From Podarcis bocagei (Eukaryota), in the NCBI GenBank assembly GCA_964188305.1, contig OZ076885.1: a stretch of 64,000 nt of DNA; one strand, given 5' to 3'. Made by a program: the position numbers and the translations under genes. Positions 39,235 to 61,728 of this stretch are shown here, one piece after another (position 1 is the stretch's first letter; each line of letters starts with the position of its first letter). The notes under the pieces are model-generated. The model was not told the DNA's origin and did no database searches. It saw only the letters and a program-made list of their open reading frames with translations.

Positions 39235-39442
39235 CTTGCAATTTCCTGCGATGGAAGCGTGGAGATCCCAGGAAGCTGTTCTTGATCGAGTTGAGCCGTG
39301 TTCTCCAGGGCATTCCTCCAATGCTGGGGCTGGATGGTGGCGTAGGGTTGGGTGTGCCTGCTGGGCTCTCCTTTGGCGTATGGACAGGTGTCCCCTTGGG
39401 GGTAGGGAGGGGACTGCCCCTTGGAGAGGGGTGAGGGGTGAC
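39235..39442 (-). CDS. BRSK2: BRSK2 coding exon, 208 nt, [69 protein letters not shown](V)
   Basis: Lies within ORF 39203..39688(-). Acceptor catcatacag|GTC, donor CAAG|gtacat; phase 0 to 1. Confidence 0.96.
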
Positions 39443-42346: not shown

Positions 42347-42407
42347 CCTTGGACTGCTGAGTGGGCTGGTCGACAGGCCAGAGGAAGCTCCACTGATTGA
42401 GCGAGAC
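42347..42407 (-). CDS. BRSK2: BRSK2 coding exon, 61 nt, (R)SRSISGASSGLSTSPLSSPR
   Basis: Manual translation. Acceptor tgtttactcag|G, donor AGG|gtaagt; phase 2 to 0. Confidence 0.96.
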
Positions 42408-48400: not shown

Positions 48401-49063
48401 ATTTTAGGCTATGCCCTCAGTGTAAGGATGAGGTAGTTTTGTTAGTGGGCCAAGCAAGACATTCAAAAATAAAATAAAATGTAAAAGCAGCTGGAGGGGG
48501 GAGGATAACTCTTCCCTCCTGCACTATTTTCCTGGTCTACGTTGCCTCCTCCAAAGATGCTATATGTTCTTTGAGGGGGAAATATAGGTTCCAATATAGT
48601 ATTTGTAAGTGTCCCCCCCCCCCGGACGAATAGCAGCTGGAAGGGTTTTAGCTGGGAAGATGATAGGAAGAAAAAAGTTTAACTGCTCTTCCCCACCACA
48701 GTGACCTTGATTCAGTTCAGCTCCCTTCCCCAAGCTGGTTTTAATATTTACCTTTTCAAAAACAAATGTAAAAGAAAAAAATTATAGGAGATCTGATCAC
48801 AGTTGCCAAGATGTCATATTGAGATTTGCCCTCACTATGTACTAGGCCTCTAAGATGCATGTGAAGTCAGAGCAAGCGCTTTCTCCCCCTCACTAACACA
48901 CACACAAACATTGTTGTATAATTTCCCCCCCCCTGTTCGTTCCCCCCCCCGTAACACAGTTTCATGATAAATAATATTTATACTGTGATCATTAAAAGAA
49001 ACTTCTCCACCCAGAAGAAAACAACAGGTCCCACAACAGGTATAATCCAAAACTGGAGCTTAC

Positions 49064-49087
49064 CCCAATGCGTCAGCACTTGTCATC
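49064..49087 (-). CDS. BRSK2: Candidate BRSK2 24-nt microexon, (R)MTSADAL(G)
   Basis: A ~90-nt AG-free pyrimidine tract ends in ccactgccaag|G; donor GG|gtaagc; phase 2-2 with no stop codon. No transcript evidence available. Confidence 0.6.
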
Positions 49088-50839
49088 CTTGGCAGTGGGG
49101 AATAAATAGAGGAGAAGGAGAGAGGAAGAAAGGGACGTGGAAGCAGGTGGAGAAAAGAGTACGAAAAGCAGAGTGAAATACTGTTCGGAGAACTACATGG
49201 TCATAATTATTGCCACAGGCATCTGCTGCTGATGGAAGCACCAGTGGGGAATTACGCATGGGAAGGGGGAGGTTTTCATTTCCTAAACAAATATTTCCAT
49301 ATAGCTCAAAATCATAGAAGTAGTTTGCATCTGGGATTATGGGGGCAGACACATCAAGTGTAAACGTGAAAAATAAAACATTGCTTGCCCACCCTCATTA
49401 AGCCAGTCTGTGGAGTTAGCAGTCCAGATCTGATTTTCGGTTGTTTTTATTTATGGCAAATAATCAGATTTTGCACAGTGGGCCGTACTGAAAAGGATGT
49501 GGATCTTCCTCCATTTTGCTCAGGTAACATTCTCCTGCCCAGTGATGTCCAGCTAGGAATCTCCTTTTCCACTGTGTATATCTATACTTTATATGTAGTG
49601 TTAAATGCACTGATAATTAAGACCAATATTTCTGAGTGGGTATGAGGCTCGGGTGAACAAAGCTACAAGTGAAGGATGTAACTCACTGGGAGTTTCTACT
49701 GGTCTGCTGAAATGTATAAAAACATATATGTATTGCCTTTCATGGCTGCTATTCATCTGAGTGAGACTCATGTAGAAATCCTGAGTAGGTTGTGTTCAAA
49801 GTTGCAACTCTACTTTAATTCTGGCTGAAAGGACCTTCAACTTTTTCCAAAATAGATAAAAATCTATTTTTATTAAATTTAAATTAAAACCAGGGGTTCT
49901 ATGCCTAAAAACAGTGGGAAATAATTGCACAATATAAAATAAATGCAGCCTTAAGCACAAGCTATTAAAGAGATGTTAACTGTTTCTCTGTCCTACTACA
50001 AATTATAACACTGCTAAGTTACATTTCTACCCTGGTTTTCATTTTAATGTTGCTCAAGTCACATCACACTTGTGATGGGCAAGCAGAAATCTGTAGATGT
50101 ATTGTGGAATAAACTTGCATGATTATTATTCATCCCCCCCCCCATATCCCAATTTTGTCTCCCTCTTCCCAACTTCTGTAGGGATCATTTTAAAAAGCTT
50201 TCATTTAAGTCTTAATCTTAATCTTAAACTTTTAAACCCGGTACTGTGCATCGTTGGTTGGTTATTTGCCCCACCAACCAAGTCATCTAACTTTCTCTAG
50301 GAGGCTGTCATAGAAACAAAAGAGCCTGTTGGTTAAGCCAATCTCAAACAACATGCTAATTTCCTATGGGAAACTTTAAAGGACTTGAGTGCAAAACACT
50401 AGATACACCAAAGAATGGCCTTTCCTCATGTTTCTGAAGTACTGTATATTTCACAAGTTTGCTCAGCATTGAGACTGTGCAACATGGAAGCTGTAAAGAA
50501 ATACTATGTCTTAGGCAACAATTAAGTAATGTCCCTTCCAACTCCACAGTTCTACCTAATTGTATGATAACATGTTGATTGCCACAGGATATTCAAACTA
50601 CTTCCTCTTTCTACTTTAGGAGACTCATCTCCACAGCCGGCCTCTTCTGTTCTGGCAGTGGAAATTTACTGCCCTATCCTAACATGCACTATTGGGCCAT
50701 AAGCCAGAAACAGCAGCTTAGAAGACACAGAGAAGGTGAAATTGCTCTCCCTCAAGCTGATCCCGTCTTCTGCTTCTGAAATAGAGTCTGATAAAGCATC
50801 CAGTGAACTGTCTTGTCTTATTTTATGGGATCAGTCTCA

Positions 50840-52420
50840 GTTTTTTTGAGGCCTGGGGATGTGGACAAGATGCTTGCCTATTTACTTACTATTTACTCTC
50901 TTGACCCTTGCTCATCATGCCTGATCAAAGCTAGTCATGCAGAGTTAACCAGGTGGATCCAGGGATTGGTAAATGCATCACTTTGTGAAACTGCATTTCA
51001 CTGTGTGACCACTTCTGAAAAACCTGTACTGGGATCCAGAGGTTTATTCCAACTACCACCTGTTTACTAATACTCCTTTTGGGGGCAGTGTGCTTGAGAA
51101 GGTGGTGGTTGCTCACCTACAGGTGCACTCTTGGAGGAAACGGATTATCTGCACCTATTTCAATCTGAATTCAGACGTGGTTTTAAGACAGAATTGGCCC
51201 TGATCACTCTGATGGATGACTTCCAGCAGAGAAGCAGAGGGAGTGCAACCCAGTTTATCTTGTTGGATCTCTCAGTAGCTTTTGATACTGCTGACCACAG
51301 TATTCTCCTGGATCATCTCCATGGGCTGGTAGGAGGAAGCACTTTATTATGGTGGACACTACCTGCAGAAATAGTTCCAGTGAGTAGCATTGGAGGACTG
51401 TGCCTTGGTTTAATGTTTAATTATGTTTTTGTATGTGCTGGAAGCCACCAAAGTAATCTGATGGATAATAATAAGAATAATAATACTAATAATATAACCC
51501 CCCTCTCCAATTCCTATGGGCTGTTCTGGTGGTTCTCCCTCCCCCCAACAATTTGGGGAGAGTGCAGGGAAAATCACTTCTGCACAAGCAGAAGTCCTTG
51601 TGCAGAGCTTCCATCGACAGAGTTCCTTAGATGAATCCCATCCAATGTCCCCAATACTATTTAACAACTACGGTACATGCAGCCACTGGGAGCAGCCATT
51701 AGGAGATTTGAAGCAAATGGTCACCAATATGCAGATGATGCAGAGCTCTGTTTCACTGTAACATCTGGGTCAGGCAAGGATGTGAATTTCCTGAACCAGT
51801 GTCTGGCCACAGTAATGGAATAAACTGAGAATGACTCCTGGGAAGACAGAAACCCTATACAGTAGATAGGTCTTTCTCATGGTCAAGAAATTAGACGTCT
51901 GCTTGTTCTGGATGTGTTTGCATTTCCTCCACCGGAGTAGGTACATAGTATCCTAGATCAATCTTTGTCAATAGAGACCAAAGTGACTAATGCGGCACAT
52001 AGTGTTCACTACCAACTTTGGTTGGTGTGACAGATATGCCCATTCCTTGGCAGCGATAGTGGTCCATTGTGTAACATGCTGTTTGGGGTGCTGCTCTTAA
52101 ACTTGGTTTGGAAGCTGCAGCTTGTGCAGAATATTGTGGCTGGAGTACTGAGTGTCTAGGTATGTACACCAGTGCTTGAAGGTCTGCACCAGGTGGCTAT
52201 CTACTATCGAGCCGAATTCAAAGTTTTATTATTAACATGTAAAGCCCTAAACAACTTGGGACCAGTATACCTAGATGACCACCTCCCCTGTTATAGGCCA
52301 AATCATCCTTTACAATAACCAGGCCCTGTTCACTGTAGGATGGCCAGTGGATTGCCAGCTGGAAACCATTTGGAAACAGGCCTCTTCAGTTATAGCACTA
52401 ACCCTCTGTCCCCCACAAGA
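50840..52420 (+). mobile_element. Degenerate L2-clade LINE reverse transcriptase fragment, frameshifted, with a nested insertion at ~51410-51640
   Basis: ORF 51131 has FQSEFRRGFKTELAL and ILLDLSVAFDTADH (RT motifs). MSPILFNNY is at ~51645, HQYADD at ~51723-51740, and an L2 C-terminal relic at ~52100-52300. Confidence 0.85.
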
Positions 52421-53571
52421 GAGATAGAAGAAGCTCAATCTCAGTTGTCTACTCAGGCGTATTTGGATGCTTGAGAGCGTTATCCTGTTCAGATTTGCTG
52501 TTTAAATGATTGTCTTATTAACAATGCATTCATTGCAATTTGTTGTATTTTGATGTCCTAATTTTTGTAAACCACTTAGGGATTTTGCCAAAAATGTAAA
52601 ATAAATAAAACACTCAACTCTCCTCCATTTCATAAATGATATTGCCATTTGGATAGATGTCCTTTCAATCAGATTTGAGGTGTTACTAGAAGGTCCATCA
52701 GACACATATTTCTAACTTATTTACACCCATACACATTATTCTTTGTGTATCCCTTATAGTCCTTGTATACATTCCATCTTTGTGAAGTTCTGGTGAATAT
52801 TACTGATGTAGAGAAGGAATATATTAAACTTATAAACCCACATTTTCATATATAAAAGGCCACATTTTCTTGCCAGATTTAGCAGTGTAGATATTTTTAC
52901 AATTGATGTTCCCAAGTACATTATCTGGTTATCTGGATGTGCATGTAAATCAATGTGCAAGTGACTGCACATAACACATACACAAATGCTGAGAAAGTAA
53001 GCAGAATTTGTGTGTGTGTGTTTATATCAATGTGGACACATAAATGCTATTAATCTTTAGTTTTCCCAGAAAGGGAAAGGCACTTAGGATTTTAACGATG
53101 AGTATGGACATCACATTGACAATGGGGAAAGAAAGTAGGGAAATGAGGTTATTTAAACAAAAATAATAATCCCAGAACACAATAAACCCAGCAGCGCAGA
53201 CATGTGCATTTCCTACAGTACTGAAGCATGTGAACTACGGAGCTGCAGCAACCCAGATGTAGAAGAAGCACTGAGGGACAGGGCAACAGATGAGAGACAC
53301 AGAAAGCTAGAAAGACTAGAAAAGAGAGAAAGAGATTGAGAGAGAGAGAGAAAATGGAGGGAGAGAGGGAGGGAAAGAAACAGTGGCCTCAGCTACCAAG
53401 ACAACTGTGTGCATCTAGAGGGGCAGGATCCTTAAAGATGCAGTATTCCTTTTAAAATAAACCAAGAGTGAGAGAAATATTAAGACATTGACCAGGCACC
53501 ATTTCAAATGTGTGATTTGTTATCCCAACAAGGAAATATTTTGATGGGGTTTTCTTTGTTGCACTTCTTTT

Positions 53572-54258
53572 CTTGACTACTGTAACTCGCTCTACGCGGG
53601 GCTGCCCTTGAAGCTGTCCCAGAAACTCCAGCAGGTACAGAATGCTGCAGCGAGGCTCCTCACAGGGTCTCTGCCATGGGAGCATATTCATCCAGTGCTT
53701 TTCAAGCTGCACTGGCTCCCGGTGGAGTACAGGGTCAGATTTAAGGTGCTGCTTTTGACCTTTAAAGCCCTTCACGGCCTAGGACCCTCGTACCTACGGG
53801 ACCGCCTCGCCTGGTATGCCCCACGGAGAGCCTCAAGGTCCATAAATAACAACACCCTAGTGGTCCCAGGCCCTAAGGAAGTTAGGTTGGCTTCAACCAG
53901 AGCCAGGGCCTTTTCAGCACTGGCCCCAACTTGGTGGAACGCTCTGTCTCATGAGACCAGGGCCCTGCAGGATCTGATCTCTTTCCGCAGGGCCTGTAAG
54001 ACAGAGTTGTTCCGCCTGGCCTTTGGATTGGAGCCAATTTGATTCCCTCCGCCCCCTTTTTCTTTTTTCTTTTCCTTCTCCTGCAATGAGGCTCCATTTT
54101 AATATTTTAATGTTCCATTATTTTAATGTTGTATTTTATTTTTGTTTTTAAGTTGTAATCACTCATCTTGTTTTTATTATTGCTTGTAAGCCGCTCTGAG
54201 CCCGGCCTTGGCTGGGGAGGGCGGGGTATAAATAAAAAATTATTATTATTATTATTAT
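53572..54258 (+). mobile_element. Young 5'-truncated L2-clade LINE (ORF2 C-terminus, 3'UTR, (TTA)n tail)
   Basis: Open frame LDYCNSLYAGLPLKLSQKLQQVQNAAARLL...LHWLPVEYRVRFK...KTELFRLAF with stop at 54042. Tail gtaagccgctctgag...gggcggggtataaataaa plus (TTA)n. Confidence 0.9.
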
Positions 54259-57687: not shown

Positions 57688-57753
57688 CTTTCTTCTTTGT
57701 TGAATTTGGGATTGGCGTCACAGATATCCAGGCTTTTACTGAACATTGTTTTA
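57688..57753 (-). CDS. BRSK2: BRSK2 alternative cassette exon, 66 nt, (S)KTMFSKSLDICDANPKFNKEE(R)
   Basis: Acceptor ctttgttcctgccatag|T, donor AG|gtataa; phase 2-2 and frame preserving. Resembles the recalled mammalian isoform insert SKAMFSKSLDIAEAHPQFSKEDR. Confidence 0.88.
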
Positions 57754-61014: not shown

Positions 61015-61437
61015 GGCTGTCTGCTGCTCACTGCAACACCATGGCTGCCATGTTTCTTCAGACAGAGATCGGAAATAATTGATTTTCAGGTAAGAAACAA
61101 GCACACATTTTTGGATGAGACCAGAGGCTATGGTGACACTTTTATTTATCTTTAGCCTATGCAAGCTTCTATTGGTGATTATTCCCTCCCCCCAGCACTG
61201 CTCTGAAATGCTGGATGCAAAGGAGTAAAAAAGTATACATATAATTTTTTAAAAAGCAACAGTAAGTAGAGTAATTAAGTAATTAAGTAATCTTCCTTAC
61301 AGATTTCTGCACAGGCTACTGTGAGAAAACCTAGACTGCTGCTCCTTCACCTGGATAAACATTATGGTGCCAGCTGAGATGGCTTCCGAAACTCTGATGG
61401 CACAGACTTCCTGACTTTTGGCTTTGGGGACCACCTA

Positions 61438-61728
<291 letters not shown>

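Follow-up and report, generated by a model that had tools for sequence, protein, structure and literature searches.

The N1 exon of c-src, an 18-nt neuron-specific exon, has CU-rich motifs of the PTB type upstream and a conserved downstream control element that contains a G-run. Among the neural microexons that depend on SRRM3/4, 74-79% have a UGC between the branch point and the AG, a motif that is helpful, not strictly required (10.1101/2024.09.17.613571). In human and chick, an extended region between the branch point and the 3′ splice site is typical of neural microexons (PMC12871342). BRSK2 (SAD-A) controls neuronal polarity and the development of axons and synapses, and loss-of-function variants of it lead to a neurodevelopmental disorder (as cited in PMC13542418).

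The window, that is, the whole stretch of 64,000 nt of Podarcis bocagei DNA that was analysed, carries the C-terminal half of the lizard BRSK2 (SAD-A kinase) gene on its minus strand. The exons were analysed one by one, with public proteins as the reference, and the following features were assigned:

61439..61589, minus strand: upstream constitutive BRSK2 exon (tblastn), reading ..DPPRKRVDS...AIEMAQHGQ and closing on AG, two bases of a split codon; its donor is 61439.

57688..57753, minus strand: 66-nt alternative BRSK2 exon, reading SKTMFSKSLDICDANPKFNKEE plus AG, in the same phase as the upstream exon.

49088..49182, minus strand: 3′ splice region of the candidate microexon, with the last upstream AG (49182-49181), a branch-point candidate, the pyrimidine tract and the acceptor.

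49064..49087, minus strand: 24-nt candidate microexon, G ATG ACA AGT GCT GAC GCA TTG GG, read as (R)MTSADAL(G).

49018..49063, minus strand: 5′ splice site (gtaagc), followed by a conserved intronic element, gtaagctccagttttggattat.cctgttgtgggacctgttg, that has a GGG run at +32.

48975..49364, minus strand: conservation island around the candidate microexon, 70% identical to Pipra over 398 nt (E 6e-49).

42347..42407, minus strand: downstream BRSK2 exon of 61 nt, with its acceptor at 42407 and a single G first (tblastn 42412-42347).

The upstream exon is contained in an ORF (61435-61677), and 49 residues of it match BRSK2 proteins at 100%. Mammalian, avian, reptilian and shark isoforms in public databases contain the 66-nt exon, with a difference of one residue from some species (ICDANP vs ICEANP), and the block around it (57880-57606) aligns to Pipra at 84%. 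Farther downstream, positions 39363-39424 lie in a highly conserved coding exon.

Read on the minus strand, the sequence runs from ccccacTGCcaag through GATGACAAGTGCTGACGCATTGGG into gtaagc, with the acceptor AG at 49089-49088 and the donor gtaagc at 49063-49058. Two bases are left by each of the upstream donors, 61439 (..CAG AG) and 57688 (..GAA AG), and one base is contributed by the acceptor at 42407 (G TCT CGC). The 24 nt between AG and GT are a multiple of 3 and free of stops, and their phase, 2-2, matches the flanking exons: the first base completes AG+G to Arg, the final GG is completed to Gly by the next exon, and the product is ..R-MTSADAL-G-SRSIS regardless of the upstream donor used. 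The original prediction had described an AG, 24 nt, GTAAGC unit behind a tract of about 90 nt free of AG, and the sequence agrees with this in every detail; the accompanying statement, that the length is a multiple of 3 and that the phase fits the 61439 and 57688 donors and the 42407 acceptor, was read directly from the same letters.

An AG...GT unit of this kind might arise by chance and be unspliced in Podarcis bocagei, as in-frame AG..GT units of 3-27 nt are abundant. The interval 61438-42408 (19 kb) was compared with 100 dinucleotide shuffles: it contains 513 stop-free units of this type vs 497 in the shuffles, and 14 vs 17 once a GTRAG donor is added. With a GTRAG donor and at least 75% upstream pyrimidines a single unit is found, that at 49087-49064, vs 0.05 expected from the dinucleotide shuffles; no other candidate combines a pyrimidine tract with a GTRAG donor. 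The splice signals by themselves are suggestive, and it is the comparative evidence that is decisive.

Full-length BRSK2 representatives were collected by using HMMER with the upstream exon peptide, and these searches were followed by junction-centred word searches. Many public BRSK2 isoforms have an insert exactly between ..KEER (or HGQR) and SRSIS, which is the junction at which an insert of eight amino acids just before RSRSIS had been proposed from the window. The inserts, by lineage, are:

MTSADALG: the geckos Euleptes, Heteronotia and Sphaerodactylus; Anolis sagrei X6/X7; Phrynosoma platyrhinos KAH0620980.1; Podarcis muralis X1 and P. raffonei X2.

MTSADTLG: Paroedura (gecko) and Crotalus (rattlesnake).

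MASADALG: the turtle Caretta caretta, isoform X9.

MASADPLG: 75 bird entries, several of them Ensembl-derived UniProt records.

MASASALG / MASALG: the marsupials Tasmanian devil and koala.

MAGAGAQG: whales and bovids.

MAGAQG: deer.

TASADTFG: axolotl.

In the 90% cluster of the Heteronotia protein, the 66-nt and 24-nt exons are combined in each of the four possible ways among lizard isoforms: neither exon is present in Anolis sagrei X8, 66 nt alone in Pogona X2, 24 nt alone in Anolis sagrei X7 and Paroedura X5, and both exons in many lizard isoforms. The +24, +66 and +90 nt products that had been foreseen from the window have their counterparts among these public isoforms. Annotated carriers include Anolis sagrei XP_060624878.2 (24-nt exon only) and XP_060624869.2 (both exons), Podarcis muralis XP_028590336.2 and Heteronotia binoei XP_060117762.1. 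The expectation that annotation tends to miss such exons was not borne out, as RefSeq/GenBank models of at least eight squamates contain the identical peptide, and the microexon, lizards with this peptide included, is already known at the level of annotation. The literature on BRSK2 splicing yielded no paper on the microexon and none linking BRSK2 splicing to SRRM4, and nothing on a BRSK2 microexon was found in the supplements of two microexon papers. A word search for transcript-derived fragments (P0311:361-460) returned only genomic read-through ORFs and BRSK1-like fragments.

Two further inserts were noted at or around the same position. Sus scrofa BRSK2 isoform X3 (P0304) reads ..KEDSPLRMGGAGAQGSRSIS, a longer insert, which suggests that another acceptor or donor may be chosen around the same microexon. 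A 691-aa BRSK-like representative (P0042) has a different insert of 18 aa (GRLLRRLHEDNDDVTVDI) at the HGQR/SRSIS junction, and this junction may be a preferred site of alternative exons elsewhere among the lineages.

For comparison at the level of genomic DNA, BRSK2 loci of Phrynosoma (L001), Orcinus (L002), Pipra (L003), Scyliorhinus (L004) and Cervus (L005) were used, together with two further loci from Onychomys (L006) and Mustela (L007). The microexon, with its AG and GT ends, was located in the DNA of Phrynosoma, Pipra, Orcinus and Cervus, and the order of the exons (upstream, 66-nt, microexon, downstream) is identical in the window and in these four loci. The orthologous units are:

Phrynosoma, L001 9998-10021: three differences from the window, all synonymous.

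Pipra, L003 19937-19960: AG/GT ends.

Orcinus, L002 51464-51487: AG/GT ends.

Cervus, L005: 18 nt, AG/GT ends.

The length is 18-24 nt in the lineages with intact exon DNA examined. Just four blocks of the 19-kb interval align to Pipra, and the island around the microexon is one of them. Within it, the segment from -130 to -51 is 88% identical to Phrynosoma and 90% to Pipra, and that from +1 to +45 is 87% and 91% identical, respectively; the proximal tract (-50 to -1) reaches 76% (Phrynosoma) and 62% (Pipra), and beyond +45 identity to Pipra drops to 27% (9/33). Since the flanks are as similar to the bird as to the other lizard, strong constraint on intronic regulatory sequence is indicated. 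Conservation had been put forward as a check on the exon, and both the AG/GT ends and the 24-nt length are kept in Phrynosoma DNA, within an island shared by bird and lizard. Set against the mere abundance of short AG...GT units, the identical peptide in models of other lizards, the exclusively synonymous changes relative to Phrynosoma and flanks conserved at about 90% to a bird make a chance, unspliced unit very unlikely.

The majority of carriers are computed XP_ models, and the exon of the public models could on that account be an annotation artefact that was spread between species by homology-based prediction. The annotations come, however, from independent sources, namely NCBI Gnomon, Ensembl-derived UniProt (with entries for Zonotrichia, Corvus and Anas) and the submitter annotation of Phrynosoma; length and sequence track the genomic DNA of each lineage, the intron flanks are strongly constrained, and the listed rodent and carnivore isoforms, whose DNA is disabled, are without the exon. 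An artefact is thus highly improbable. The 24 nt at 49087-49064 are very probably the lizard ortholog of a conserved, frame-preserving BRSK2 cassette microexon that inserts MTSADALG, and this insert would be included alone or along with the upstream 66-nt alternative exon.

Disabled copies were found in two placentals. In the ferret (Mustela, L007 46673-46696) the donor GT is changed to CT and the ATG to GTG; in Onychomys (L006 41618-41640) the equivalent unit has 23 nt, by which the frame would be broken, and the branch-point candidate TTCAC is lost. No isoform with the insert was seen among those listed for ferret and Onychomys, which is weak evidence, as clustering at 90% can hide isoforms. 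In the 1.4-kb orthologous intron of Scyliorhinus, the 66-nt exon is present and no credible candidate for the microexon was found. The insert of the axolotl indicates that the microexon is at least as old as tetrapods. By the comparison of isoforms and loci, sauropsids keep it tightly, and in placentals it varies and has in some cases been lost; the drift of peptide and length in mammals, taken with the disablement in ferret and Onychomys, speaks for a function that placentals, at least, can do without.

The region 5′ of the microexon has the layout of an extended 3′ splice site. The zone free of AG is 91 nt long (49180-49090), with a pyrimidine fraction of 0.81 from -100 to -4 and with UCUC and UCUU/CUCUCU motifs inside the pyrimidine tract; in the four species measured (window, Phrynosoma, Pipra and orca) this zone extends over 88-101 nt. 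Just 3′ of the last AG lies the candidate branch point TTCAC (49177-49173, with the A at 49174, i.e., -87). No other yUnAy match occurs between -110 and -15 in any of the five species examined; TTCAC stands at -82 and -92 in the two remaining sauropsids and, closer to the exon, at -62 in orca and deer. These lengths and distances stand against a median of 45-47 nt in neural microexons (PMC12871342). A purine occupies position -3 of the acceptor in all five (cAAG, cGAG or tAAG; cAAG in the window), which makes the acceptor weak. The donor, GTAAGC or GTGAGC after GGG, can pair with U1 over six contiguous positions (-1 to +5), and its sequence is kept among sauropsids; a G-run follows at +32 in sauropsids and at +7 in two mammals. 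No RBFOX motif (GCATG) is present within 290 nt downstream in the five species examined, and the nearest ones were located at -94 and +292 in Cervus and at -333 in Pipra.

The window has UGC motifs at -83 (49170-49168), -58 (49145-49143) and -7 (49094-49092). The original prediction had regarded a UGC close to the 3′ splice site as an SRRM4-type signature, and this was sustained in part: each of the five species has one or more UGC motifs between candidate branch point and AG, whereas the proximal UGC, at -7 in both lizards and at -9 in orca, is missing from Pipra and Cervus. The exon would be too short for ordinary exon definition, with a poor acceptor, and recognition may rely on the single distal branch point TTCAC and the long AG-free UCUC/UGC pyrimidine tract and, further, on the putatively strong donor and the conserved downstream element with its G-run. 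Such an architecture is that described for neural microexons activated by SRRM4/SRRM3, and SRRM3/4-dependent neural inclusion is plausible. Outside neurons, inclusion could be counteracted by PTB proteins on the CU-rich tract.

It is also possible, and we hold this tentatively, that a real conserved microexon is included mainly under factors other than SRRM3/4, such as PTBP1 derepression on the CU-rich tract, hnRNP H/F on the G-run, or factors acting at the downstream element. The absence of the proximal UGC from Pipra and Cervus would fit such control, as would the sharing of a CU-rich tract, a distal branch point and a downstream G-run among the species, and the best-conserved flanks (-130 to -51 and +1 to +45) are other than the UGC-proximal part; moreover, a sizeable share of dynamic chick brain microexons is without UGC (PMC12871342). 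On the other hand, all five species retain a UGC between candidate branch point and AG, a UGC is not strictly required for the response to SRRM4 (10.1101/2024.09.17.613571), and the overall architecture is that of the described SRRM3/4 targets.

Folding of three sauropsid sequences with RNAalifold gave a weak consensus (-27.7 kcal/mol, covariation -1.4), which was rejected as evidence of structure. In this consensus the GCUU..GUCCC part of the tract (49146-49134) is paired with the 5′ splice site GGGGUAAGC (49067-49058) in all three sauropsids; the changes within the helix are one-sided and none is compensatory, and it was not counted as structure. Two long G-runs (of about 10 and 9 bases) occur on the minus strand at 48946-48921, some 120-140 nt 3′ of the microexon and just outside the block conserved in the bird.

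Between the 66-nt exon and the microexon, a deep-intronic element on the minus strand (53470-53040) consists of blocks of about 95 nt and 210 nt, which are conserved in the window, Phrynosoma and Pipra and have a CT-rich stretch of variable sequence between them. The element contains in-frame stops, is absent from the public isoforms examined and found no match in Rfam; a poison exon, a splicing element and an enhancer are all possible roles for it. Rfam gave no family match within 48800-53800, and no convincing long-range complementarity was found between the island around the microexon and the second of the conserved intronic blocks. On the plus strand, 53608-54042 holds an ORF of 144 aa (..LQQVQNAAARLLTG..LHWLPVEYRVRFK..), which may be of a repeat-derived kind that is widespread in reptile genomes.

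In the Podarcis isoform P0311, Pfam places the kinase domain at residues 20-270, UBA at 300-342 and KA1 at 689-801, and the insert comprises residues 433-440; the solved structures of BRSK2 span just 1-348 and 684-813 (PDB). As the insert falls outside both the Pfam domains and the solved structures, it is placed in the unstructured linker that separates UBA from the AIS-KA1 module, where the Ser/Pro-rich regulatory tail begins. All lineages seen have R-S-R-S-I-S when the exon is skipped and G-S-R-S-I-S when it is included. Skipping would thereby yield a motif of the RxRxxS basophilic-kinase type, in which inclusion would exchange the Arg at -5 for Gly; inclusion would also add Ser/Thr and Asp, and the isoforms could differ in phosphorylation or docking at the entrance of the Ser/Pro-rich tail. 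The Ser of RSRSIS may be phosphorylated. A microexon that acts as a phospho-switch, its inclusion removing an RxRxxS (AGC-kinase type) site in front of the inhibitory Ser/Pro-rich tail and so tuning the BRSK2 kinase in particular neurons, is a doubtful proposal; such a layer appears to be strongly constrained in sauropsids and to be on its way to loss in several placental lineages (ferret and a cricetid rodent).

Two alternative exons that can be combined in the BRSK2 linker are useful for the interpretation of isoforms and variants. The recognition of a true 24-nt exon from raw sequence without tools has mostly the value of a positive control. What goes beyond annotation is the unusually strong conservation of the flanks between lizard and bird, the apparent erosion in some placentals and the proposed change from RxRxxS to GxRxxS.

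Compared with the SRRM3/SRRM4 (nSR100, eMIC domain) programme, the BRSK2 exon shares a length within 3-27 nt, preservation of the frame, a long AG-free tract, a distal branch point, a UGC between branch point and AG and conserved introns, and its host gene is likewise neuronal or endocrine; its donor may be strong as well. It departs from that programme in its proximal UGC, which is not conserved across lineages, and in its erosion in some placentals, whereas typical members are deeply conserved. With c-src N1 it has in common a very short cassette, CU-rich motifs upstream and a downstream element with a G-run, but unlike N1 it has no UGCAUG (RBFOX) element nearby. Closest of all are the annotated lizard isoforms, which have the gene, intron and phase in common with the window and the identical peptide MTSADALG; in Phrynosoma the AG/GT ends and the exon length match in DNA as well, and the intron flanks are homologous. 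There is no substantive difference between these isoforms and the microexon of the window, which is another lizard's copy of it.
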